In this document: in pieces, positions 19,500 through 45,199 of the stretch
Position numbering within the stretch: position 1 is the first letter of the stretch
Layout of the letters: the number at the start of each line of letters is the position of its first letter
The notes under the pieces: model-generated
What the model saw: the letters and a program-made list of their open reading frames with translations, nothing else
Database searches by the model: none
Told to the model about the DNA's origin: nothing
Assembly (NCBI RefSeq): GCF_021869535.1
Contig: NW_026262701.1
Location: 18,414,001 to 18,478,000 of the forward strand
Source: Mytilus californianus
Lineage: Eukaryota
Direction of reading: 5' to 3'
DNA: 64,000 bases
Translations under genes and position numbers: made by a program

Positions 19500-22400
19500 A
19501 TGGCTGAAAGTCTAAGAACGTCAGGAGTTAGGCAACGTTTAATTCAACCAGAAGCTGAAGATCCTGAGTGGGATCCATCGTTACCTTACGGAGGAAAAGT
19601 TTATTTAGCTAGAAAAAAGAAGCCGGACCCACTCCATGTCAGAATTATTGAGGTATTTACATTGTGTCAATAATAGTGTATTGTTTACTTATTTCTGACA
19701 ACTTTCCTTAAATCCACAACACCAACGCTCCATCTTTATTTTTCATTTTTTTTACCATTTTTATTATTGTAACACACATAGTAATATGTACACCTCGATC
19801 ATCATCCGATCCTGCACCACTGCCCTGCACTAACAGTCGGAACACTGAAACTTTTTAAAAGATCAAATTCAAAGATCACTATAGTCTTGCGTTAAAACTT
19901 AAATCTTGTTCAAGTTTAGGAAGGGATTGGTCATTTTCTGACAAAATGCAATCTGATTACTCACAAAACGGTTTCGGAAAAGGATTTTTTGTATCCACGT
20001 ATTTTTATCTTGGTTGTACATGTTTATCAAGCCATGTAATCAGCATTCCAATAGAGAACCAACTGTGCCATTTCTCTCGCCTATACCTGTACCTTTATTT
20101 GTATGAGTAGAGGCAGATTTTCACATGGGAGGTTTGAGAATAAAATGAAAAGCATATTTTACGCTCCGCAATAAAGATGTTGTAATTTTCCGGAAGCCTC
20201 TTAAGTTGATGGCATCTTTCTCATTGAATTTGAAAATAAAGGAACTCTAAAAGTTACCACATATATATACAGTTATTCGAATAACTGGTTTTTGTTTTAT
20301 TTCTCCAAATATTTAGATCTATTTGACAACATGCAGTCCATGCTGACTATTCATTTTTTAAGAAGTGGATGTCTGTAACATGTTTTAATTACTCATTTTC
20401 AAAAGTTGACTTTTTGTGGACGTCGCATGGCGGATCATGGCGACGTTTCCTTTGTCACAGAGTTTACTTGTGAAAACTTCATCAGATCTGCTGATATATA
20501 CTGTGAACGTGTTGTGTATATATAAATATATTGAGCTATTTTGAAAGACGTGCATAATGTCAAATCATAAAAATACAAATAGTAAAATTTGGATACTGTA
20601 ACATTAACGTGATAAAGGTCTGTTTCATTCCTTGACTGACGCACAACAATCGACAGTTAGTGTCTTTTATGAACTAACAAGACATACATGTAATCTCGTT
20701 CTTCTTACACGATTCCAATTGTTTTTACTTTTCCATATAATGTAGCAACTTTCCAGCAGCCCCTGATATTTCAGAGCATACGTTTTCCTATGGGAATTTC
20801 CTTGATAGAAAGTTGATGATCTCAACCAAGGTGCTTAACGATATCAGTATAGTTGAAGTATTTTCTTCGAAAGTTTTACTGATGGGCGCCATCATTACTT
20901 CGTTGACCGATACGAAAAATATGTGTCAAAGGTGACATTTTCAACTTGTTTTTTTTTCCTTAGTAGCAATCCTTAGCACCAAGTTTTCCCTTGTTATGAG
21001 ATGTATACCAAGCCATTATATATATATAAGAGCGAGAACTCTTTATCCTCCCGGAGTTCAACCCGATTATTTTACGGGTTTCGTGTTTGTTCCATCTTCA
21101 GTTTTGTGGACCTGTTTCAAAAAAAAATATGTTTGCCTTTTGTTTCATGGTGTTGACGGTCTGTCTACTTATGACTTTAATCCCATTTGAATCTTGTTTT
21201 GGTTTCCTTTAAACATTGTTTTGGTCCCCTCGGAATCTTGTTTGTGGTTCCTTTTGAAAGTTGTTTTGGTTTGTTGGAACTTTGTTTTTCCCCATTGGAA
21301 TCATTTTACTTTTTCAAGAGTTTTCATTTAATTCAAAAGCCATAAGAGAATAATGCATTTTTTTAAAAGTCAAGGTTAAGAGTGTCGTTAAATGATTGTG
21401 CATTGACGATCGTGCGATAAAAGTAGGATTTCACAATGAACGGAACATTCTTTTTTTCTCTTTAAGGAATGACTGTAATATTTTTTCTGTCTATGAAGAA
21501 ATAACATCAAAAATGTGGTGCACACTAAATAACCCGCGTAGCGTGTTATTTTAAAGTGTGCACCACATTTTTTATGTTATTTCGAATAGACAGAAAAAAA
21601 TATTACAGTCATTTCTTATAATTTAATTCTAAATTTCATTTTAAACCGGAGTAAACCATAAAACAACGTTGATGACGTCACGGTCACATGACAAAATTAT
21701 GTCTATGAACTGATAAACAAAACAACGTCAGCCAATCAGAAGACGCGTTACATCCAAAATTAAATTATTAAAGTATAGCGTATTTTTACATATATTTGCA
21801 CAAAACACGAAGGACATGTTCCGCTTCTGTAAAAAAAGATGATGCTATATGTGGCCAAAAGAAAAAAAAAAAACATGTCTTGTTCTCTATGTTTTAAAGT
21901 GGACATTTCTATTTTCTTACAGGCAATGGTTGTGATTGGGACTTTAATTTTTGCACTTTATGCATACTACTATTTCGATCACCTGCATTTCCACGTCACT
22001 TATGCATATGGATGGCTAGGTTATCCACAAGCTCAACATCAAGTCGGACAACGATATCTTCATGGTATGAACCAATTTCTTGTATTTAATTGATATGGAT
22101 AACAGGAGATTTTGTTTATACATCGATGAGATTGCAACACAATGAGACAAACAAAATACATCTCTTACAACAATCGTCAACAATACAGACTGTTGTTAGC
22201 TATAAATTTATAAAAGATATGAATACATTTAAATATAGATCCCAACAAAGATCTGTCTTCAACGCCAATTTCTCCAAATAAGAAAAGAATTATTAGATAT
22301 ATAAGACAAAACTGACGAGGTTTACACTTAGGATCGACACATGAATATATCAGGGGGTTAAAAAGGTATGGTTTGTTTTATTTAAATCCTTTTAGTCATG

Positions 22401-25389
22401 ACCAATTTAATGTTCCATTCTTCACAGAATGTGCACACCCAAATGAAGAAAAACTTCATATTTAATATAAAAACTCATATATACACATTGATTGATTTGT
22501 GTTTAAAGTCACTTTCAGCACTATTACGCTATTTGATGGCGGTCTGTTTTTATTGGTAGAGGAAGCCGGGGTGCCCGGAGGGAACCGCCAACCTTCGATA
22601 GGAAAACTGGCAATCCTAGTCAATTAAGCACCTGGTACATGCCGGATTCGACCTCACAACCTCAGTGTTGACAGGCTAGTGACTCAGTAGTTCGACTACT
22701 TGGACCACTAGGCCACCGAGGCCCCTTATACACATGCAGGGCCAGTGACATACGACTTTGATTTGTACGGCTCCATGGACTCGGATGAACCAAAACCGTA
22801 TGTAACCATTCCCTCTTCTGTGAGGACATGCATGCTAATTAACCCCAAAATTCGATTTTGTTGATAGAGCTCCCTCCAATATTTGTCACGAAAAAAACAT
22901 GATTTGAAAAAGACGGTTAGACCAAGTGACATAGACATGATAGAAGTTAAAAACCATGATATGTAACTGTATATACGACCTTCAACACTGAACAAAACCC
23001 GTACCAATCTAATAATATTCAGCTCCCGTGTTCAAGCTTTGCTTACAAGGTTTGTAAGCAAAGCTTGGATACAGGATCTGTATTTTAATTAGATTGAACC
23101 CATATCGCATAGTAAGCTATAAAAGGCCTGATATAATGACTAATGTAAAGCAATTCAAACGAGAAACTAACTGTCAATTAAATCCATACATAGCATACTT
23201 TTTATCACTTATTGCAACGACAGAACTTGGAATATAATTAGGCCTATCTGTCGGGATATAGTCGGTCGCATTAGCAATCCATTTCCTACCACTTGGATCG
23301 AAACTATCTCAAATTAGGCTTTTCTCAAAATCTTCTCGTCTGAAACGACTGATAAGACTTTAATCAAACTTTGTGTTAATGTTCCTTTGGTGAACTTGTT
23401 AATAAATCATATCCAAGGTTTTGATTCATCAAGAAAAAATTGCTGATGTTGCTAAAATAGAATAAAGGGGTCAAACTGCAGTAATGGACTTATGTCAGAG
23501 ATAGAGAAACTGCAGATTGGGAAATCTGTCAGGTTAAAAATGATGTACTTTTTAGTATTATTGCTTCCTCGTGTATCTGTTATCGAGCTAGGTGAGTCTA
23601 AATGTGTGTTTCTTTCAACAGGCAAAGGAGTAGACAAACACGAGGGCAAAGCTATGGAATGGTTTAAGTAAGTATATGATTATAGGTAGTATTAAAAATG
23701 TATAATACTGTAGTAATAAGTCATTGGTGATAGCGAGTATAAGGGAGAAGATGCTATGTCTTGAAGTATACTATTGGTCGTTAAGCAACCAATACTTATT
23801 AGCCTAAAGGTTTGGGGGTAGACAACATGTGTTCCAAACATATTTGAATTTTCATTTATGGCTTAAATCTTAAAGAATTAACGTGATCAACATTTAGGAA
23901 GTTTTGTTAAAATTATGAATGCGCAGTTCTTTGTTAAGCAATTAAAAGTCGCGTGTGTAAGCTTTAGACAAAATAAATGTTAAAGAACTCGTATATATGT
24001 ATACATCGCATAAAGTGCGCAAATAGAGAAAATAATCGATGCAGCATCTTATATCTCAAACTAAGATTATGATAAACAAACCAAGGTTACATAATTGTAT
24101 AGACTCATCGTTTGTTTACTCATAAATTTATTTCCAATTTTTATAGATTCGGGACCATTTAGAGCTTGACCTATATGTCTTTTTGTCGTTATGTTGTTGT
24201 CTCACTGGCCGTAAATCCCACATCTCTTTTACAGTGCATTCATAAGATATCGATCGGTTGTTGTGTATGGTACCGACAACGTGATACATGATTAAGTCAA
24301 TATAGAAACCCAGTTCCTTCTTTAAATGTAAACTAATTTAAAAAGAGAATTATGGTCCATTTATATGATATTGATTTCTGGTCTTTTTGTCATTTTATAT
24401 ATTCCTATTTCTTTGATTGAGTACTACTTAAATTTCTATACAACATCATACGTTAGGTACAATATATTCTGAATTTCTCTCCAACAGAAAGGCTGCGGAC
24501 CAAGGACATCCACATGCATCTTATAATTTAGCTATCGGTCATATGAAGGGGTACAAAACTGGACTTAAACCTGGGTAAGAAAACATAGTTGTTCAGATCT
24601 AAAACGGATGCAATAGTTTTCTTGTAAACTTTTAAAGTAACTTTAGCTAATGCATTTGCTAATGCATAAACCCATACTGATATGTATGTTTTAAATAATC
24701 ATTATAAGAGTGTCTGGACGGGGACCCCTTCATTATAAGAGTGTCTGGACGGGGACCCCTTCATTATAAGAGTGTCTAGACGGAGCCCAAGGGTCCTTCT
24801 TTTCTTTATTCTTTATTATTTATAAGAGTGTCTAGACGGGGCCCAAGCAGGGGTCCTTCTTTTCTTTATTCTTTATTATTTATAAGAGTGTCTAGACGGG
24901 GCCCAGGGGTCCTTCTTTTCTTTGTTCTTTATTTTTTATAAGAGTATCTAGACGGGGCCCAGGGGTCCTTCTTTTCTTTATTCTTTATTTTTTTATAACA
25001 TTTTTCTCTATTCATTATTCATGTTTGCCGATTATTCTATATTCTATAGATTTTAGCACCCCATTATTCTCTATTTTCTATTTTTTTTGCCTATTTTTTT
25101 TCTTTCTGCCCGTTATTCTATACTTTTTGTCCATTATTCTCTATTCTGTAAACCTCACCTAGACCCTCTTAAAGGAATTCCATAAAAGGCATATTCCAAC
25201 GGATAGAAATTATTTTAATTTTGAATAATAATTATGTATGGGAATTCAATACATTGCAAGTTATATATCTTTTTATATGTTGTTTTCAGAGAATCTCATC
25301 AGCTAATTGCCCATGCAGCTTCAAAGGGTGTAAAGGAGGCCCACAGGGTTTTGAATGAAGTTTGTGCACGAGGAGGATGTAAACATTAG
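19500..25389 (+). CDS. Uncharacterised single-pass membrane protein with Sel1-like repeats (175 aa). Exons 19500-19652, 21923-22064, 23622-23667, 24488-24574, 25290-25389
   Basis: The five exons splice in phase to 528 nt. Hydrophobic segment AMVVIGTLIFALYAYYYF; Sel1 motifs AQHQVGQRYLHGKGVDKHEGKAMEWFKKAADQGHPHASYNLAIGHMKG; ends HAASKGVKEAHRVL...GGCKH*. Confidence 0.85.
20735..20945 (+). pseudogene. Decayed Penelope-like RT remnant in intron 1 of the Sel1 gene
   Basis: Degenerate traces of CSNFPAAP, FLDRK, NQG and cttcgaaagttttac..gggcgccatcat...gttgaccgatacg (LRKFYGRHH..VDRY). Confidence 0.45.
21465..21617. repeat. Long imperfect palindrome (fold-back element)
   Basis: ~70-bp arms aggaatgactgtaatattttttctgtctat...tgtggtgcacact / agtgtgcaccaca...atagacagaaaaaaatattacagtcatttctt. 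Confidence 0.75.
22489..22726 (-). mobile_element. Full-length tRNA-derived SINE with V-domain-like core
   Basis: Minus strand has A box TGGCCTAGTGG, B-box-like GGTCGAATCC, core CTCCGGGCACCCCGGCTTCCTC and a (TCAA)n tail. 9-bp TSD TATACACAT at 22480-22488 and 22727-22735. Confidence 0.8.
24705..25172. mobile_element. MITE with six-fold reiterated left terminus, Sel1 gene intron 4
   Basis: taagagt(g/a)tct(g/a)gacgg at 24705, 24736, 24767, 24823, 24883 and 24939; inverted end tagaccctcttaa at 25160-25172. Confidence 0.6.
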
Positions 25390-30199: not shown

Positions 30200-33100
30200 A
30201 TGGTAAGAGTAACATAAATAATGTCTTCAACTTAAAATGATTCGGTAATCCATCTTCTTAAACCAAAGAAAGTTAGCTCGCAGATGATATGTTAAATAAT
30301 GAAAATAGGTGAAAACACAGACAAAATATAATTTCTGCACTTTCATATATTTATGACACTTTTAGGAGAAAAAATTCGCTGAGTTATTTGAATTGTTCAC
30401 TATTAGAGTCACTCGCACTTAATGACATACGATACATGAGATATTTAACATTGATTTTTACCCATGTTAAATTTTTATATATGTATCGACCATGCAACAT
30501 GTACATGTATGACTCATATTTCAATACTTTTCTGGAAAAATAATACACAATAAAACGAAAAAAGGTACCTTCAATCAGATTTTGTATAGTGATCAGTAGT
30601 CTTTACATTACATGTAGTTGCTAAATTGAAATTAAAGTAAAATAAAACTATTGTAAACAGGATAGAAAGCCTTAGATAACTTTTCTTCTGACATCAGATG
30701 GGTAAAGAAAAGTTCATGCATTTAATTTTTGATGACATCATTTGAAAAGCATAAGACATTTTTATAGCAAGAAAATGTGTCCATTGTGACACCATACCCC
30801 ACTCACACTATCACATAATTTTCCAAGTTCAGTGAACCATGAAATTTGGATTAAAATCCTATTACAGTGCATTCAGATATATCTGCACACCCAAGACTTT
30901 TGGCTTCACTTTGGTAATGTCATAAAACCAATAATCGGATAATATTGTGTAAACAAATTCAATGAAATTCATGACTTACTTTAATTTCATGAAATCTTCT
31001 TTTATGTATGGTTTCACCCTTAAGATTTTATGTAATGTCTCCAAGATTAGGGAAACTCCTGTTTTGACAGTTCAAATGTCTGGTGATTTGGCACATGCCT
31101 TCTAAGAATAGCTAATTTTGAATGCAGGAAAGATTTTCTACTTTGAAATGTAGTTCAGTTTGAACCAAACAGACTGCCAAGGATGCAGAGCAAAATTTAT
31201 TTTATTTTGATAAAAAATGACTTAAAATGAAACCAATTTTATCTAATGATGTAATTTTTTTATGGAAAATAGTTAAATATGGTTAATCATGGGATTGCAA
31301 TTATAAATTAAGATTGAACTTATCAATTTTTATCTTTGTTGTCCCTTTGGAAGACTAAAACAATTAGAAGAACGATTCTATTTGTTAAATTACAGATATG
31401 ACGATATCAGATAATGTGCGATATCACCAGCTGCACGTACAAAGGGGATTCCACTGTAAATCAGCATAGATTTTAACATATTTCAGTTTCATCAACATGG
31501 ATACTTTTTTATATTTCAAACTATTGCCTTCTATTTAGTGTCAAATATGGCTCTTTACAAACTTACTCCTTTATTATGTTTATAGTTCTTATTTATGAAA
31601 TCTCTACATCATATAACACCTTCATTAAATTACACATCTTATATTCATCTTTTATTATTATATTTCAGTCTGAAGTAGAAGAAACATTGAAAAGAATCCA
31701 GGGCCATCGTGGGGTCATAGGAACTATCGTTGTAAATATGGAAGGTATATTGCTTAGAAATACTTTGTTCAATGGGTGGTCAAATGTAATTATAGACATG
31801 TCAGATAGACCAGTATATATTGAGTAGTCATTTTAAACTGTGCATAATTTGATAACAAGATTTTTATGTTTCTCAAACATGTTTTGCAGTGCATGAATAT
31901 TTGCAGGATAAGCCAGAATTTCATAATTTTCTTAAACATGAATACATTTTGTCCTGATTTGTTCTCTTCTGACATGGATATTAAGTTTCTTTTATTATCA
32001 GTGGAATAACAATTTTTTAGTGAATGCCAGAATGGCTAAATATATATTATTAGAAGTAAGAAAATAACTTCCATCTTGACTGTAAAGAAGTGCTATTACT
32101 TCAATTAGAATTTCAACTCATGATGGTTTTCTTTTTGTTGGATGGAGTGTGCGCATGCGCCGAATTCGGACGTATCCTTTTTCATCTCCAAGAAAAGTCT
32201 TACTAAAGTTATTTGTATCCTTTGTAAAATTTATTTAAATCAATGTAAGTTGGGTAAAGGTGTTCCATTATCTATTACATTCATTGCAACATAAAAGTTA
32301 GGACCAACCAACATCAATCAACAACGAAATCCTGAGTTAGAAAGCGGTTACCTATGTAAACAAAGAACAAAATGGCGGCAAATACGAAATAGAAATCTGA
32401 CAGCTCGACAGTCAAGTGGAAGTTAAGAAAGGTGTGTAGGTGAGTTCATCTTATCACCACCTTCTTACACAGCCCAAAGATGTCACAACTAATTATATTT
32501 CTATTTTTATTGTCATTTGGATACCAACTATGTCTAGCCAAAATAACAGACCAACAAAATATTTTGACAAAATCAAAACAAGGGGAGCATATGTTTACCA
32601 TTATTAACAACTACAACCCAGAGTATATAAACCATTTTACCATCATTGACAACATTAGAACTGAAATACTTAGTATGAATGAGAGAAGATTAATATATCG
32701 TAAAATGATAAACCATCTCACCTATCTTTCAATGATACTAATTCTTATATCAAACGATGTAAATCTTAACCCTGGACCTGAATGTTCAAACACCAGTGGA
32801 ACTGTATATCCATGTGGCACATGCGACCAACCAGTTACATGGCAAGAACGAGGTATAGTATGCGATACATGCAACCAATGGTACCACATCAGTTGCCAGG
32901 CTATGCAAACTAAGTCCTACCTAGAACATGTGAATGACTCCGCCATTGCATGGGATTGCATTATGTGTAATTGTCCAAATTACTCCACCTTCTGCTATTC
33001 TTTGGTATTCAGCACTTCAAATCATTTCAGCATACTGTCAAATATATCCATCAGCAGTCCAACATCTAGCATCATAAAACCATTACATACTTCAACACCA

Positions 33101-36100
33101 GAACGGAAAACACAAAAGAAAAAGGAGCAAGAAGATTCAAATCCTAAGACTATTCGAGTATTAAATGTCAACTTCCAGTCAATAAGAAACAAACAAGGCG
33201 AACTTATAAATCTTATTGAAAGCACAAAACCAGATATAATTTTTGGAACTGAAACCTGGCTTGATTCATCAATAAAAGACTCGCAATATTTTCCAGATGG
33301 GTACAATATTTACAGAAATGACAGAAACTTAAGTGGAGGGGGAGTACTCATTGCCGTCAAAGACACATACATCACTTCATCAGTACCAGAACTTCAAACT
33401 GATTGTGAAATTGCTTGGTGCAAGATGGAAATTGTCGGGCATAAAACTGTCTATCTATCTAGTTACTACAACCCCAAAACATCAAACGAAAAGGGATATA
33501 ATGAATATGGAATAAGCATTGAAAGAGCCAGTAAAATACGAAATGCATTCATTATATCAGCTGGTGATTTCAACCTACCAGGCTGGGATTGGACTAACAA
33601 AGAGATCAAGATGCACACCCAATGTGCAACAAATCATGAAAAATTTGCTGATATATTGGATGATAATGGGATGGCACAGCTTGTAAATAAACCAACCAGA
33701 GGACCCAATACTCTTGATCTTGTTGTAACAAATCATCCTGAAAGCTTCATGAGAGTTGAAACCTTACCTGGGCTCTCCGACCATGAAATCATTTTCACAG
33801 AAGTTAATCTAAATCCCCGGAAATCTATTCAAAAACCAAGGATTATACCGTTATATAGAAAAGCAAATTGGGAGAATATGAAAATAGATATGAATAACTT
33901 ACACCATGATATCACCCTAATGAATGAACAAAAGGCAGGAGTAAATACATTATGGACACACTTCCAAACCAAACTTGAAGAGAGCATAGAAAAAAATGTA
34001 CCGAAAAAGACCGCTAGGAAAAAGGATGGTAGTCCCTGGATCACATCTGACATCAAGCGTCTCATACGAAAAAGAGACAGATGGTTCAAAAGAATGAAAA
34101 AATCGGGTAATGGAGGAGATAGAGACAAATTTAAAGAACTTAAGCGTCGTACACAGAGAGAAATTAGGAAAGCTTACTGGAATTACATCGACAGTATAGT
34201 TTCACCACCAGACCTAATTAAACCTCAAGAAAGACCAAACTGTATGAAAAGGTTCTGGACCTTTATAAAACACAAAAGGTCAGATGGGAGTAAAATACCA
34301 CCTCTAAAATCAAATGGAACTTTACATTCAGAGCCAACAGAAAAAGCAGACATACTCAATGGCCAATTTCAGAAAGCCTTTTTAGACAAAACCAGCATAA
34401 CAGAAAAAGAATTTCAAGAACAGTGTAACATGTCCGGAAACTTTGAACAAATCTTGGACATCAATATAACAGAAAATGGTGTGTACAAACTACTAAATAA
34501 CCTTAATCCAAATAAGGCAGCTGGGCCAGACAATATAACACCAAGAGTCTTAAAGGAACTTGCATTACATATAGCACCAATACTGACAACATTATTCCGC
34601 TGCTCATATCAGACAAGCGAAGTACCTTGTATTTGGAAATCTGCAAACGTCTGTCCAGTGTATAAGAAAGGGAAGAAATACGATCCGATAAATTATAGGC
34701 CTGTCTCTCTCACTTGCATAGCATGTAAACTAATGGAGCACATCATAACTAGCCATATCATGTCTCATGCAGATACTCACAACATCATGTATCCACTTCA
34801 ACATGGGTTTCAAAGGGGATTATCATGCGAATCACAACTGATTGAATTTATTGATGATGTAACTAAAAACTTAGATCAGGGGAAACAAACAGATTGTCTC
34901 ATAATGGACTTCTCCAAGGCATTTGATAAGGTTAGTCATAGCCTTCTCATCCACAAACTGAAGCATTATGGGATAACCGGTAAAACAAATGAGTGGATAA
35001 ACAACTTCCTCAGTGATAGAATACAGTCAGTAGTTGTAGAGGGTGAAACATCGACCTCCATACCTGTAGAGTCCGGCGTACCACAAGGATCCGTCCTGGG
35101 ACCTAGCCTATTTTTGTTTTATATAAACGATATGCCCCAGGGGATTCAATCAACTGTACGACTGTTTGCCGATGACACTATTGCTTATCTCACCATCTCA
35201 TCCAATGCAGATGCCGCAAACTTACAAAAGGACCTTGACCAACTGGCTGTATGGGAAACAACATGGCTTATGAAGTTCCATCCAGACAAATGTAATGTAC
35301 TCACCATCTCCAAGAAGCGAACTCCATCAAAGTACAATTACACACTACATGGCCATAACCTCGAACATGTAACATCAGCTAAATACCTGGGATGCACCAT
35401 TTCATCAGATCTTAAATGGGGGAAACACATAAGCTCCATCTGCTCCAAAGCCAACAACACCATTAGCTTCTTAAAAAGGAATGTTTACATCTCAAACAAG
35501 TCAATTAAAGAAAAAGCATACATGTCCCTCGTCAGGCCTACTTTAGAATATGCTAGTGCAGTATGGGATCCATACCAACAAAACGACATCCACAGATTGG
35601 ACATGGTGCAAAGACGGGCAGCAAGGTATGTTACTAACAGATATCACAACACCTCATCTGTTAGTAGCATGCTTGAACATCTTGAATGGTCTACCCTACA
35701 AGAACGAAGGAAACATAGCCGCTTAATAATGATGTATAAGCTACAAAACAACTTTGTCAAAATCGATACATCCAGTAAGCTAATACCGAATGAACGCCCT
35801 TCCAGAAATAATAACGAAAAGGCACTTAGAATACCATCGTGTAAAACAACTGTACGGAAGGAGTCGTTCTATCCCAGAACAATCAGAGAGTGGAACACCT
35901 TGCCCAACTCTACTGTCTCCGCCCTGAGTCCTGAATCCTTCAAGGCTCAGCTCCATCATTAGATTAAATGCCATGTTTTTAATTGCACCTGTATATATAT
36001 TAAATTGCACCCATTCTCTTTTTGTTTAATAAATTTCAAAAATATTTCATGCGCTCACTCCAAAATGTGGCAGAATAGTCAACCAGTTGACGGTGGCCGC

Positions 36101-38548
36101 TTACCGGAAGAAGAACCCACGGACTATGCCTATGGATGATAAAATCAGTAGTGTTTTTAAAGACCCAACACAAACATAAATGACTTTCTAAATATGCTAC
36201 AACAGTTTAAACATTACAAATGATAAATATAAATGCTATAAACTTAACTGAAATGCATCAAAGCATCTTAAGAGTATATTTTCAACAATTCTACATGAAG
36301 TGGGCTTCGTGTCTTTCAAAATACTTTTAATAACTGATTATTTGATATGATTGATAATGAAATTTAACAATCGATTATCAGACTTCAGTATTTACATAAT
36401 CAAGTTGATTGCTTCAACATGTTCAACTGGCCAATTCTTTGATTATAGTGGATCATAATATAAGATCATCTGTAAAGTTATGGTGTAATCTAAACCTTTT
36501 ATTGACTCATCGTTCCCCCTAAATGAAAACTGCTGTTCGGGAACAAAATATTATAAAAATCTCATGTGCAGAACGTACATGTGTGTCAACACATTGCATG
36601 AGATCAGACTGTGTACATCTAATTTTTGCATTAATAATATGTCATGTCTGTGAAAGAATAATTTATAAGTTTAGTACTTAATTTGCATTGCAAGGTATTT
36701 CATAATAAAATAGTTCATCCAAACACATGAAAGAATGTAGTACTTGTTTCTCATATCTGTCAGTTATTCAATTTAAAGTTTTACTTTCATATCTATGATT
36801 ATTAATGTACACTTAGGTGATTTCATATCTCTTGCACCTGTAAAAACTTGTGAAAAGAATTACAAATGTATGCATGAATTATTTTCAGGTATTCCCATTA
36901 GAACAACCCTTGATAACTCTACAACAGTACAGTATGCTGGTCTGATCACACAACTGACATCCAAAGCCAGAAGTACAGTTCGTGACATTGATCCACAGAA
37001 TGACCTTACATTCCTAAGGATACGATCGAAAAAACATGAAATTATGGTTGCCCCTGGTATGTGTATAGATTGTTTTAATGCATTTTACATGTACATCATT
37101 TACATATTTTGTCCCTATGTAGATATTTCAAAAAAAGATGACAGTATAAACATTCCTTTTCAATATTTGCGTTTATGGTACCATTCATGATTAGATGAAA
37201 ATATATTGAACACTGTATCATCATGTCAGTGGTTAAGAAATTTTGCATAATGTAATTATCAAAATTTGAAAAAGTCACTATCATACATTAGATTCTGATA
37301 TCATAGATATTATTTGCAAGTTTTTAAATGCTTCATAAGATGATCATAAATTTTGTCCACTTTTAGTTTATGCTTTACTTTATTAATTTGTTTCTCTTTA
37401 TAAACATACAAATTTAACAACTTACAACAAACTTTGCTAGTTAAATTAGTGGTTTATGTGCTTGCAAATGTGCTCTTGGTTTAGGTTATGTAGCTTTATT
37501 TATATTGTATTTGTGTGCACATACACATGACACATTTTAATCATATTTATAACACAGATTGTTTTTGTTTTTGCTTTTACTAATATTATTAACTCTAATC
37601 TGACAGATAAGATACTTTTACTAACCAGGACCAGGCTCACAGTAGATTAATTACTTTCTTTAAGAATTTATGTCTCAACACTCTATTGGGTTTTAAAGAT
37701 CGGACATCTTAACCTTTTAGCTTACTACTAATATTGTATTGTTGGTCAGCCTGAAACATGTCAGCTATTGTTAGTAATGTGTAATGTCAAAGTCGGTGTG
37801 AGCCTTACCATCATAGAGTTGTTATTCAATTTGTTTGGACAAAACATTTGGGGGGTTCATAAGACCAACTGCTGCTAGTGTTTTGATTCACATTACTCTG
37901 TATCAAATCATTGAACTCTCCCTTCATACTCCAAAAAGAGGTTATTCAATGGTTATATTTTAGAAAATAATGTTAATAGGTGTGTATCCAGAAATATTTA
38001 AAAGGGGATTTTGGTTGCTTAAAAGTGTGATTAAGAAGAAAATTAAAAGAGAGGGGGTTCAAACATCCAAAACCAACTCTCAACCAATTAATGATAATTT
38101 TAAATGTGTATAATATATGCTTACATTTGTAATGAATGGTGTTTTTAAACTTTGTGTGGCTGCTAAGCTAGATAATAAAAACTGTTATGCTAAGCTTGAG
38201 TTGAGTTATTTAATCTAATAAAACATCAAATAATTTTTATGCAAATTTATAAATTTATTATAATATAATGTAAATAATTGGTAAAACATTTAAAGACAAA
38301 ACAATAATATTTAAATATAATAAAATATATATATATATATCATGTATATCATGTCTATTAACCAAATGAACATATTAAAAAAATTATAAGAAATTATACA
38401 GTTAATGTAGAAATTAAATGCAAATTTTGTAGTGCACGATTTCAAAACTACTCATATTACTGAGAGCATTGCTTTAGATGTATATTTCTCTATTTATACA
38501 GAAAATGAATATTTGTTGATTGTCATCCAGAATCCTGATGCGGTGTAA
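30200..38548 (+). CDS. DYNLRB: Dynein light chain roadblock (97 aa), isoform A. Exons 30200-30202, 31669-31744, 36889-37056, 38502-38548
   Basis: M|[26 protein letters not shown]|[55 protein letters not shown]|[15 protein letters not shown]. Canonical splice sites and roadblock signature. Confidence 0.93.
32100..36115 (+). mobile_element. Non-LTR retrotransposon (L2/Daphne/Crack-like group, clade inferred), apparently full length, in DYNLRB intron 2. 5' boundary approximate
   Basis: One intact ORF, 3' UTR stem GTCAAC-ca-GTTGAC (36078-36091) and GAAGAAGAA tail (36107-36115). No TSD found. Confidence 0.85.
32480..35962 (+). CDS. LINE polyprotein (1160 aa): signal peptide, hydrophobic segment, 2A-like NPGP, PHD finger, APE endonuclease, reverse transcriptase
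   Basis: PHD C-x2-C...C-x2-C...H-x2-C...C-x2-C. APE motifs LNVNFQS, GTETWL, GDFN, LDL and SDH. RT motifs [36 protein letters not shown]; C-terminal WNTLP. Confidence 0.95.
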   Translation: MSQLIIFLFLLSFGYQLCLAKITDQQNILTKSKQGEHMFTIINNYNPEYINHFTIIDNIRTEILSMNERRLIYRKMINHLTYLSMILILISNDVNLNPGPECSNTSGTVYPCGTCDQPVTWQERGIVCDTCNQWYHISCQAMQTKSYLEHVNDSAIAWDCIMCNCPNYSTFCYSLVFSTSNHFSILSNISISSPTSSIIKPLHTSTPERKTQKKKEQEDSNPKTIRVLNVNFQSIRNKQGELINLIESTKPDIIFGTETWLDSSIKDSQYFPDGYNIYRNDRNLSGGGVLIAVKDTYITSSVPELQTDCEIAWCKMEIVGHKTVYLSSYYNPKTSNEKGYNEYGISIERASKIRNAFIISAGDFNLPGWDWTNKEIKMHTQCATNHEKFADILDDNGMAQLVNKPTRGPNTLDLVVTNHPESFMRVETLPGLSDHEIIFTEVNLNPRKSIQKPRIIPLYRKANWENMKIDMNNLHHDITLMNEQKAGVNTLWTHFQTKLEESIEKNVPKKTARKKDGSPWITSDIKRLIRKRDRWFKRMKKSGNGGDRDKFKELKRRTQREIRKAYWNYIDSIVSPPDLIKPQERPNCMKRFWTFIKHKRSDGSKIPPLKSNGTLHSEPTEKADILNGQFQKAFLDKTSITEKEFQEQCNMSGNFEQILDINITENGVYKLLNNLNPNKAAGPDNITPRVLKELALHIAPILTTLFRCSYQTSEVPCIWKSANVCPVYKKGKKYDPINYRPVSLTCIACKLMEHIITSHIMSHADTHNIMYPLQHGFQRGLSCESQLIEFIDDVTKNLDQGKQTDCLIMDFSKAFDKVSHSLLIHKLKHYGITGKTNEWINNFLSDRIQSVVVEGETSTSIPVESGVPQGSVLGPSLFLFYINDMPQGIQSTVRLFADDTIAYLTISSNADAANLQKDLDQLAVWETTWLMKFHPDKCNVLTISKKRTPSKYNYTLHGHNLEHVTSAKYLGCTISSDLKWGKHISSICSKANNTISFLKRNVYISNKSIKEKAYMSLVRPTLEYASAVWDPYQQNDIHRLDMVQRRAARYVTNRYHNTSSVSSMLEHLEWSTLQERRKHSRLIMMYKLQNNFVKIDTSSKLIPNERPSRNNNEKALRIPSCKTTVRKESFYPRTIREWNTLPNSTVSALSPESFKAQLHH

Positions 38549-39810
38549 AAGTTATCTCCCATAAGTATACAAGGTACTTGAACGGATGCTTGCAAAATTG
38601 TATGACATTTCAATTTTTGAGAATGGGCAATTGTTTCCTAAAGTTTTGGTTTACAATCAGTTATGCTTGTAAAAAATCCTGTTTTCCTTATGTTGATTGA
38701 CTCTAGTTTTTTTTTTTTGGTTTGAAGTCTTATTTTGTTTATTTTATTATCATGATTATTGCTGATTGCAAATTGGAGTTTTTCTATGGATTTAAGTTAG
38801 TTTCGTTCTTTTGTTCAGTAATCTTTTCTTATTCTTACATGTCTATAATGATATGAAAATTTGAACAGTTTATGTTAAGACATGGATTGTTTTGGTTATG
38901 ATACTGTAGTTAATTTTAATTAGTTTTATAGTATGCATGCATATTTTCTTACATTTCTTGCTCTGTACAGAAACTTACTGCTTACAGATATACACATTGT
39001 AAACTAATTACTTCACAGCTAACTCTCATAAAAACAATTTGTTTTTATATACACACGTCACAATTTATATTTATGCACACACACTTTTCTACATCTTTTT
39101 ATCCTTATCCTAACCTAAGGATAGAGTTATGCACACACATTTTGCTTCCTCTTTTTGTCCTTATCCTAACTACAGCTTATTTTCAGGTAGAGACATTAGT
39201 CAACACTACATCTCATTTCTTATCATGCATGAGATGCTTAGATTCATAAGGTACACAGTGTCACTAGTTGCCATCTGACATACTATCTTTCACAGAAAAT
39301 TTATAATTGTTCAGAGAGTGTTCTAGTTCATATTAAGACACTAGAAAAAAAATTCCTATTCAAAATTATCCGGAATCCCAATGTGTCCTTTTGTATGACT
39401 GAAAAAAATAAATGTATGCACTAATGTGTTGCTCTTTTAAATTAATAGTCTTGTTCTAAAATACAAAAAATTATTAGAAGAATTTTCTCCTGAGGACGGT
39501 TTTAAAAGATTTTAATGGGACAACTCACTATTGAAACAACACAGTGATGTTTTAAACTGAAGATAATAATGTTAGAGTGAATAATGTAAACATGGTAAAC
39601 AGACTAATTTTATTTGACTCTTCAGAGTTGAGATAAAGAATGTATAAAGAATCTCACAACTTACACACATTTAAAATCAATGTAGCACTTAACCTGAAAT
39701 AAATTACAAAGTCTACTCAAATTATTCTAAGACAGACCTTACTAAGGTATTAATTTTAAATACAAGTTATGAAATACAGTTGCTGAATAATATATTGTTC
39801 TCTATTTCAG

Positions 39811-39857
39811 AAAAGGAATATACATTGATCTGCATACAATCACCATATGACAATTAG
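39811..39857 (+). CDS. DYNLRB: DYNLRB alternative terminal exon B (EKEYTLICIQSPYDN*)
   Basis: Acceptor ttctctatttcag; same phase and same 47-nt length as exon A; homologous peptide; AATAAA at 40080-40085. Confidence 0.8.
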
Positions 39858-40844
39858 GCTGTGGAACTTACATCTGGAACAAAACTTTGAATATTTCTTG
39901 TTTTAATGTTATATATATATGTACAATTTGTCTAATGTATTTACGTTTTTCGACTTTGTGACCAAAATTAAGCATTAATTTACTTCATCATTAAAGATTA
40001 TTTATTGGTCCGTATGTGAATTTTATCATTATTGAATACACATATAAAAATAAGTTTTCTTGTGTTTTTGTATCTAGCAAATAAAATAATTTATCAAGGC
40101 ATGACAAAAATATTAGTTTTCAAGTAATATTATTTATGGAGGTTTTCATCAGCACTAAAAGTTTGACAAGAATAGGTCAGCTGAAGTCTGCCTCTGTGTG
40201 CATGATTTTCTCACTGTGTTGAAGACCCATTGGTGGCCTGGGGCTGTTTTCTGCTCTTTAGTCAGGGTTGTTATCTCTTTGACACATTCCCCGTTTTCAT
40301 TCTCAATTTATCAATGTTTTTTTTAATGTGTTTTTGTAACAACTTGTTACCAATGCTAAAACAAATACTACATATGATTGAAACCTTACTTAGATATGGT
40401 CACATTTAATGAGAGCAAGATCCCTATTGATTTTGAGGTCACTGATGACTGTTTAAGGTCAAGGTCATAGTTGCTGAAATAGATTTGTGTTAGACAATAT
40501 TACTGTCTAAAATCATAACAGAAAATAATCATACACCTTAAAGTAAACAGAAAACAAAACTATACCACCAGGTCACTAAAAGCTTTTTTGATGGAAAAAG
40601 GAGGAGGGGAGGGGGGGGGGGGGTAATGCTATGTATAAATGTTTTGAATGTATAATTAAAATTGAAGCTTCCATGTTTTGAAAGTAATCTGGAGATATGG
40701 TCTGTGGAAAAATAAACTGCCTAAAAAATCTTAACTGGAAGAGCTTGTATTGTAACTACACATTTAAAGATTTCTTATTTGGCAAAACATACAAATAGAA
40801 AATTGACAGAGACAAACTATGCAATCTGAAATTTTGTACATTTA

Positions 40845-42975: not shown

Positions 42976-45199
42976 AAACTGTTATCACAGAGATATGTCT
43001 CGCCTTTTTATACGACCGCAAAAAATTTTTTGTGGTCGTATATTGGTATGACGTTGGCGTCGACGTCGTCGTTGTCTGAAGACACATTAGTTTTCGCACT
43101 CTAACTTTAGTTTAAGTGAATGGATCTCAATGAAATTTTACCATAAGGTTCAATACCACAAAAGAAAGGTGGGGATTGATTTTGGGGGTTATGGTACCCA
43201 CAGTTTAGGAATTAGGGGCCAAAAAGGGGCAAAAAATAAGCATTTTTGTAACTTCCAGACATAACTTGTGTGTAAGTGTATGGATCTCTCTGACATTGTA
43301 CCACAAGGTTCCATATCACAAAGGGAATGCTGGGATTGATTTTGGGGGTAATTGTGTCCAAATTTTAGGAATTAGGGGCCAAAAAGGGGCAAAAAACAAG
43401 CATTTTTCTAGTTTCATGACAATAACTTGTGTGTAAGTGTATGGATCTCTCTGACATTGTATCACAAGGTTCCATATCACAATGGGAATGCTGGGATTGA
43501 TTTTGGGGGTAATTGCCTCCAAATTTTAGGAATTAGGGGCCAAAAAGGGGAAAAAAACAAGCATTTTTCTAGTTTCATGACAATAACTTGTGTGTAAGTG
43601 TATGGATCTTTATGAAATTGTACTACAAGGTTCCATATCACAAAGGAAAAGCTGGAATTGAGTTTGGGGGTAATTGCCCAAAAAGTTTAGGAATAAGGGG
43701 CCAAAAAGGGGCCAAAAATAAGCATTTTTCTAGTTTCCAGACAATAACTTGTGTTCAAATGTATGGATCTCTCTGAAATTGTACTGCAAGGTACCATACC
43801 ACAAAGGAAAGGCTGGGATTGATTTACGGGGTAATTCCCTCAAAATTTTAGTAATTAGGGGCCATAAAAGGGCAAAAAAACAAGCATTTCTCTAGTTTCA
43901 GGACAATAACTTGTGTGCAAGTGTATGGATCTTTATGAAATTGTACTGCAAGGTTCCATATCACAAAGAGAAAGCTGGGTTTGAGTTTGGGGGTAATCGC
44001 CCCAAATGTTTAGGAATTTGGGGCCAAAAAGGGGCCAAAAAACAAGCATTTTTCTAGTTTCCAGACAATAACTTGTGTTCAAGTGTATGGATCTCTCTGA
44101 AATTGTACTGCAAGGTACCATACCACAAAGGGAAAGCTGGGATTGAGTTTGGGGGTGATGAATCATAAGGGGGTTCAAAAAATAGGTTAATTAAAATTTT
44201 TTAAGTTCTTAGACCACTTTCATTCTGTGTGAGAAACCTATGCTGTGTCAAATATTTAATTACAATCCAAATTCAGTGCTGTATCAAACTTGAATGTTGT
44301 GTCCATACTTGCCCCAACTGTTCAGGGTTCGACCTCTGTGGTCGTATCAAGCTGCGCCCCAGCGGAGCATTTTATTGTAATTTTGATAATGCAAATGTTG
44401 AAATTAAAATAGCAATACTTTAACATGTAAGTTATGCAAATATTCAAAGTCTATGAACCATGACTGAAGGTACATGGCTAAACAATCTCCATGGAATGAG
44501 ATGTGCCAATGCTAATACAACTGCATACCAAATACCATTGACTTATTATAAGTCGTTCCCTTTAAACAAACCTAAACACAAACATTAACTTGTAAACTAT
44601 GTAAAAGTTTCAAAGTCAATGAACCATGATCAGGGGTGGGGCTATATAATTTCCATGGAAACCATGACTGAGGGGGCGGGGCCAAATATTCTCCATGGAA
44701 ATTAGATGTGCTAATGCTTATATAACTGAACACCAGTTAACATTGGCCTACCACTAATGGTTCCCCTTGAACTGACCTAATCACAAACTAATACATGTTA
44801 ACTTAGCAAAATTTTCAAAGTCTATAGACCATGACTAAGGGGGCGGAGCCAAAAATTCTCCATGGAAATGAGATATGCCAATGCTTATACAACTGTATAC
44901 CAAATATCATTGACCTACCACTAGTGGTTCCCCATAAATGGACCTAATCACAAACGAATACATGTAAACTATGTAAAGTTTCAAAGTCAATAGACCTTGA
45001 CTGAGGGGGCAGGGCCAAATAATCCCCATGGTAATGAGATGTGCCAATGCTAATACAACTGCATACCAAATATCATTGACCTACCACTAGTGGTTCACCA
45101 TGAACTAGACCTAATCACAAACTAATACATTGTTGATGTCGCCGACGCCGGAAACAGCATACCTATGTCTCGCTTTTTGACTCCGTCAAGGCGAGACAA
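42976..45199 (-). mobile_element. HINE-like family A copy interrupted by a family D element
   Basis: 3' terminus at 42976-43004; ~170-bp cores at 44420-45130; 5' hairpin TGTCTCGCTTTTTGACTCCGTCAAGGCGAGACA at ~45166-45198. Confidence 0.65.
43005..44376 (+). mobile_element. HINE-like family D element with about 6.5 x 161-bp core repeats
   Basis: 5' hairpin TATACGACCGCAAAAAATTTTTTGTGGTCGTATA, CGT microsatellite, ataacttgtg about every 161 bp from 43261, 3' subTIR GTGGTCGTAT plus hairpin GCTGCGCCCCAGCGGAGC. Sits in a T-run with no TSD. Confidence 0.75.

Follow-up and report, generated by a model that had tools for sequence, protein, structure and literature searches.

The window analyzed here is a stretch of 64,000 nucleotides (nt) of the genome of Mytilus californianus, in which positions 20200-49857 are 100% identical to assembly GCA_021869535.1 (JAKFGE010000005.1) over 29,658 bases. 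On its + strand the window carries a five-exon gene for a Roadblock/LC7 dynein light chain. Very probably, the last coding exon of this gene was duplicated in tandem and the upstream copy, exon A, is used as a stop-carrying cassette ahead of the downstream copy, exon B, giving two versions of the last strand of the protein.

Structure of the gene

Exon 3 (168 nt, 36889..37056, + strand; IPIRTT...HEIMVAP) encodes strand 2, helix 2, and strands 3 and 4, and ends in a phase-1 donor (G/GTATGT). Exon A (72 nt, 38502..38573, + strand) contributes the glutamate that completes the split codon and 14 further residues, reaches a TAA stop at 38546-38548, and runs for 25 nt more to a donor (AAG/GTACTT, GT at 38574). 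Exon B, the common terminal exon (39811..~40100, + strand), reads (E)KEYTLICIQSPYDN up to a TAG stop at 39855-39857; it is coding if A is skipped and 3′ untranslated region (UTR) if A is included. Its poly(A) signals are ATTAAA at 39990 and AATAAA at 40080, and its 3′ end is approximate. The coding segments of the two exons (38502-38548 and 39811-39857) are 47 nt each, have AG acceptors with similar pyrimidine tracts, and share the upstream phase-1 donor at the end of exon 3; 7 of the 11 core residues are identical within Mytilus. AATAAA motifs lie at 39407, 39698, and 40080. The coordinates, donor phase at 37056, segment lengths, translations, and AATAAA positions given for this region in a first-pass annotation, made from the sequence alone, were all correct. 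From exon 3 to the end of exon B there was no further open reading frame of at least 60 codons, apart from two chance reading frames at the border of exon 3.

The start codon ATG (30200..30202, + strand) stands at the end of exon 1, directly before a donor (GTAAGA); the gene called for protein P0002 begins there (L010:10001). Exon 2 (76 nt, 31670..31745, + strand) encodes 25 residues and the first base of a Gly codon, covering helix 1 and strand 1, and its end is spelled by the unaligned ends of RNA reads ahead of exon 3.

Splicing of exons A and B

RNA was mapped on positions 36600-40200 of the window, using the raw reads of a single stranded M. californianus run and the contigs of three other runs. 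Read depth over exon 3 was ~110-130, and nearly all first mates lay on the minus strand, which fits + strand RNA in a stranded library. Both junctions proposed in the first-pass annotation were present: 37056>38502, from exon 3 to A (36 reads, GT..AG), and 37056>39811, from exon 3 to B (101 reads). A third junction, 38573>39811, joined A to B in 37 reads, so that reads leaving A for B were about as many as those entering A. No read depth was found in 38657-39019, and at most ~1 up to 39503, in the raw-read run. Thus, exon A is a 72-nt internal cassette and not a terminal exon, and in these data neither AATAAA 39407 nor AATAAA 39698 is used. Depth over exon B dropped from 57 to 6 after 39987 and to 0 after 40108, coverage ending past both ATTAAA 39990 and AATAAA 40080. 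The mRNAs that contain A and those that skip it therefore both end in exon B and have one common 3′ UTR. The idea of duplicated alternative terminal exons was thus right about two homologous exons encoding two last strands, but A is an internal exon spliced to B, and the distinct 3′ UTRs suggested for the two forms are not supported by these data. Two length variants were seen in the exon B 3′ UTR of the M. californianus reads, with 2 bases missing in an AT run at 39910 (37/67 reads) and 1 base missing at 39946 (41/50 reads); these are probably alleles.

Inclusion of A amounted to ~26% of transcripts in the M. californianus raw-read run. Both exon 3 junctions were also found in contigs of a closely related sister species (~5% intron divergence), in which a 73-nt contig (38501-38573) ends at the exon A donor. 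The k-mer depths of the sister-species contigs, which are weak evidence, point to roughly half A inclusion, and in run X5 only the form joining exon 3 to B was assembled. Judged by runs and contig depths, the A:B ratio may vary between samples. Contigs of the sister species also span intron 3 into exon A without a break (37452-38530) at ~2-4% of exon depth, a signal suggestive of unspliced precursor RNA or of DNA carry-over; sequence divergence from the window over this interval is ~5%, compared with 1-2% in exons.

The two protein isoforms

Skipping of A yields protein P0002, with the C-terminus ...APEKEYTLICIQSPYDN (longer tail stretch ...HEIMVAPEKEYTLICIQSPYDN), and inclusion of A yields protein P0121. 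P0002 is 100% identical to an M. californianus RefSeq protein. P0121 appears in the M. galloprovincialis annotation as "isoform X2" and occurs under further Mytilus accessions; in M. californianus itself the A form is probably unannotated, as the RefSeq name bears no isoform label. Each isoform has 97 residues, and the two differ only in residues 83-97, which make up the turn after strand 4, strand 5, and a short C-terminal tail. The differences between A and B in Mytilus are N84K, L87T, V90C, N93S, and the last three residues.

Both isoforms are complete Roadblock domains. Against the Robl_LC7 profile (Pfam PF03259; cut-off 23 bits), isoform A scored 87.8 bits and isoform B 87.6 bits, both covering profile positions 2-91 of 91. 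Among solved structures, similarity was found to DYNLRB2 in 9fqr and 8j07 (expect value 6e-51) and to Drosophila LC7 in 3l7h/3l9k (8e-46). The AlphaFold2 models, of moderate confidence (mean predicted local distance difference test scores of 71 and 74), gave both isoforms the helix-strand-strand-helix-strand-strand-strand fold, with helices at residues 2-12 and 36-56/59 and strands at 17-24, 29-32, 69-72, 77-83, and 86/87-92. The last of these, strand 5, lies in the alternative segment, which the first-pass annotation had placed in the terminal beta-strand region. Compared with the animal consensus, the core of the strand is preserved in A and the initial D/E-K in B, and neither copy can simply be called ancestral.

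Conservation and age of the exon pair

Orthologous loci were fetched via annotated proteins and then scanned for A- and B-type exons; Ylistrum (a scallop) and Dreissena were represented by annotated proteins only. An A-type exon upstream of a B-type exon, behind the same phase-1 donor, was found in five loci, four from bivalves and one from a limpet: Crassostrea virginica (A of 15 residues; B DKEYLLICIQSPHE), Sinanodonta woodiana (A of 15 residues; B DKEYLLICIQSANE), Mercenaria mercenaria (A ESDYMLITIQNPAAV; B of 15 residues), the protobranch Solemya velum (A DSDYLLIVIQHPDAAI; B DKEFLMICIQSQTERTPC), and the limpet Lottia gigantea (A of 15 residues; B EKDYLLICVQNPEN). Exons A and B thus both have orthologues in other molluscs, and because of this their resemblance to each other is not a matter of chance. 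Scans of Octopus vulgaris, the annelid Lamellibrachia, and Branchiostoma (one genome each), and of a second Mytilus Roadblock gene, yielded no A-type exon; a permissive pattern and sliding block substitution matrix (BLOSUM) scoring, applied to the intron and to 2-6 kb downstream, gave nothing above background.

The second Mytilus gene (protein P0018; locus L009 11184-15901, Mytilus sp., GCA_963676685.2) encodes an 87% identical protein and has the same intron positions, with a B-type last exon only. Its existence weakens one part of the first-pass proposal, namely that a single gene stands in for the paralogs of vertebrates; that one gene makes two protein ends is borne out.

The A peptides of mussel and oyster were identical at 15/15 residues, and the five DNA differences over the 15 full codons were all synonymous. 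Among six molluscs, nonsynonymous divergence (dN) was 0-0.38 for both exons and synonymous divergence (dS) was saturated. With dN far below dS and conservation over bivalves and Lottia, purifying selection acts on both exons, as the first-pass annotation had argued from the shared residue pattern. Mean differences per 33 nt were 8.2 for A vs. A, 11.2 for B vs. B, and 13.0 for A vs. B; of the 64 arrangements obtained by swapping A and B labels inside each species, the two that separated the types best were the correct one and its mirror image. The lower silent-site divergence of A is expected for a regulated cassette exon. Residues kept type-specific over bivalves and Lottia are N/S (A) vs. K (B) at position 84 and a tail of the Ala-Val/Ala-Ala type in A vs. 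other tails in B. This pattern fits a single tandem duplication of the last coding exon that predates the divergence of bivalves and gastropods, with each copy under its own selection thereafter. Repeated duplication or homogenisation of A and B does not fit the clustering of A with A and B with B.

A GT lies 25-35 nt past the A stop in 5/5 bivalves. Judged by these putative donors, with read support from Mytilus, the cassette layout is probably general among bivalves. In Lottia there is no close donor after the A stop, and an AATAAA lies ~90 nt past it; the layout of the locus suggests that exon A of this species may be a true terminal exon.

Two further candidate copies were seen. A possible third, decayed copy at 39347 of the window (KKFLFKIIRNPNVS, BLOSUM score 25) was rejected: its score is within the background of 17-29 reached at unrelated places in other loci, and it is without reads. 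Solemya velum has, ~8 kb ahead of its Roadblock start codon, an additional B-like exon (DKEFLMICIQSQIE, followed by a stop; L004 1821-1865) whose acceptor context matches that of the true exon B and which might belong to a local segmental duplication.

Surroundings of the Roadblock gene

In Mytilus (window 20200-25389), Crassostrea (L001 6384-7734), and Sinanodonta (L002 1-2942), the next gene upstream of Roadblock is a Sel1-repeat gene, and the neighbourhood is therefore conserved. Downstream of Roadblock, MATCAP was found in Lottia and Mercenaria, and a dynein heavy chain gene (4,678 residues; DHC_N1, DYH2-5-8_CC) was found ~3 kb away on the same strand in Crassostrea virginica (L001 18469-25414). 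Intron 2 of the Mytilus gene contains a long intact reading frame of the long interspersed nuclear element type (32444-35959, + strand, the same as Roadblock; ~1,170 residues) with endonuclease and reverse transcriptase motifs. Self-comparison of the window showed tandem repeats at 43102-44156 and 44661-45130, with offsets of ~160 and 167 bases and 86-87% identity.

Alternative explanations

On one alternative view, A and B are terminal exons that each end a transcript of their own, with separate 3′ UTRs and poly(A) sites; AATAAA 39407/39698 would serve A, and AATAAA 40080 would serve B. The motifs are indeed present at these positions, and in Lottia the AATAAA ~90 nt past the A-like stop, with no good donor nearby, indicates that such a layout could hold in some species. 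In Mytilus, however, depth falls to 0 behind A (38657-39019; no more than ~1 to 39503), the 36 reads that enter A are matched by 37 that continue to B, and the 73-nt sister-species contig stops at the A donor, leaving this explanation with next to no probability. Exon A could instead be an unproductive "poison" exon, whose inclusion merely lowers Roadblock output and whose peptide has no role. It does introduce a stop upstream of an exon junction, and its DNA is more conserved than that of B even at silent sites, as is common in regulatory cassette exons. We nevertheless regard this as very improbable: mussel and oyster differ in A by silent changes only, leaving the peptide identical, dN is far below dS over the six molluscs, and the A-type core strand agrees with the animal consensus. 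Moreover, the A stop is 25 nt before the junction, under the threshold of ~50-55 nt for decay, all five bivalves have a GT 25-35 nt past the stop, and A-containing mRNA makes up about a quarter of steady-state transcripts.

A larger share of probability, although still a minor one, goes to the possibility that both isoforms are made but are interchangeable, the pair persisting by neutral subfunctionalisation of expression or because inclusion of A is tolerated as well as its skipping. The differences between A and B are few and mostly conservative, their fit to the Pfam profile is equal, and DYNLRB1 and DYNLRB2 give similar dynein-dynactin motility in vitro (PMC10886578). Against this, the type-specific residues have been kept apart over bivalves and Lottia, a pattern not easily accounted for unless A and B are each under selection of their own. 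The duplicated exon with A as a stop-carrying cassette that yields two last strands is the reading we prefer, and several points weigh against it or parts of it. The share of A differs by run (~26% of raw-read transcripts, none assembled in X5, about half in the sister species), contig depths being a poor measure. Cassette use of A was seen only in Mytilus, the donors of the other bivalves being read from sequence and some of them weak, and Lottia has no close donor at all. The 50-55 nt decay rule is a vertebrate one and may not hold in molluscs. Finally, a functional difference between A and B is conjectural.

Proposed mechanism and function

The reads show a binary choice in splicing: the donor of exon 3 is joined either to the acceptor of A, at a distance of 1.4 kb, or to that of B, at 2.75 kb. 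Two stable mRNAs with one 3′ end result, encoding two proteins that differ in 15 residues. The A form would escape nonsense-mediated decay because its stop is just 25 nt before the last junction, inside the 50-55 nt limit known from vertebrates. In solved Roadblock dimers, helix 2 and strand 3 form the dimer contact. Since this contact is encoded by the common exon 3, A/A, B/B, and A/B dimers should all form. The variable turn, strand 5, and tail might then tune the fit of the dimer to the intermediate chains of cytoplasmic, intraflagellar, or axonemal dyneins, or to other partners. By analogy with vertebrate DYNLRB1 vs. DYNLRB2, such tuning could depend on tissue. A more specific version, in which A/A or B/B homodimers serve the symmetric intermediate-chain pair of cytoplasmic dynein-1 and the A/B heterodimer serves asymmetric axonemal or intraflagellar pairs, is speculative and we think it rather unlikely.

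Comparison with known systems

Tandem duplicated, mutually exclusive exons form a known class, with examples in tropomyosin, ion channels, and Dscam. The mussel exons resemble this class in being adjacent, homologous, of the same phase, and old and conserved, and in encoding the same structural element, one per protein. They differ from it in that mRNAs containing A also contain B (37 reads), so that exclusion operates at the protein level only. No special block on double inclusion is needed, because the stop codon within A makes the proteins exclusive.

Like vertebrates with DYNLRB1 and DYNLRB2, the mussel has two close Roadblock chains per organism, and its protein is ~85% identical to both. 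Whereas the mussel isoforms vary residues 83-97 by splicing of one gene, DYNLRB1 and DYNLRB2 are the products of two genes, and their 75% identity leaves differences all along the chain. In mouse testis they are expressed in mutually exclusive cell types, one mitotic and the other meiotic, and have non-redundant functions (PMC10042829; PMC10886578). The axonemal LC7a-LC7b pair of Chlamydomonas and Tetrahymena, in which two distinct Roadblock-family chains occur together (PDB 7kzm chains I and J; 9e5c), is a precedent for non-identical partners; those chains, however, come from separate and much more divergent genes, and pairing of mussel A with B is a supposition. Dynein intermediate chains also gain subunit diversity by splicing, with tissue-specific use (PMC2908135; PMC10886578), but that splicing alters the disordered N-terminal region, upstream of the Roadblock site.

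The first-pass annotation knew of no description of this arrangement. A full-text literature search found no paper on splice isoforms of the Roadblock C-terminus, and a 2024 review of dynein non-catalytic subunits treats Roadblock paralogs only, with no Roadblock splice isoforms (PMC10886578). Databases, however, already list both isoforms (GenBank VDH93954/VDH93955 for other Mytilus; RefSeq X1/X2 for C. virginica), as well as the A type (X1) for Ostrea edulis, and both oyster isoforms are also present in a de novo transcriptome. The locus is thus a real, conserved, and fairly ordinary tandem exon duplication with alternative use, undescribed in the papers found.

Significance

For genome annotation, the case is one of a coding cassette exon that has its own stop near the donor and is easily mistaken for a terminal or decay-triggering exon. 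For the Roadblock family, the interest lies in how small the variable part is. Roadblock clamps two dynein intermediate chains together. Vertebrates need two non-redundant paralogs. Selection in molluscs has retained two versions that differ within 15 residues, a much narrower natural experiment, which points to strand 5 with its preceding turn and the tail as a small, testable segment. If the choice between A/A or B/B and A/B dimers did operate as outlined, the turn before strand 5 and the C-terminal tail would decide which dynein Roadblock joins.

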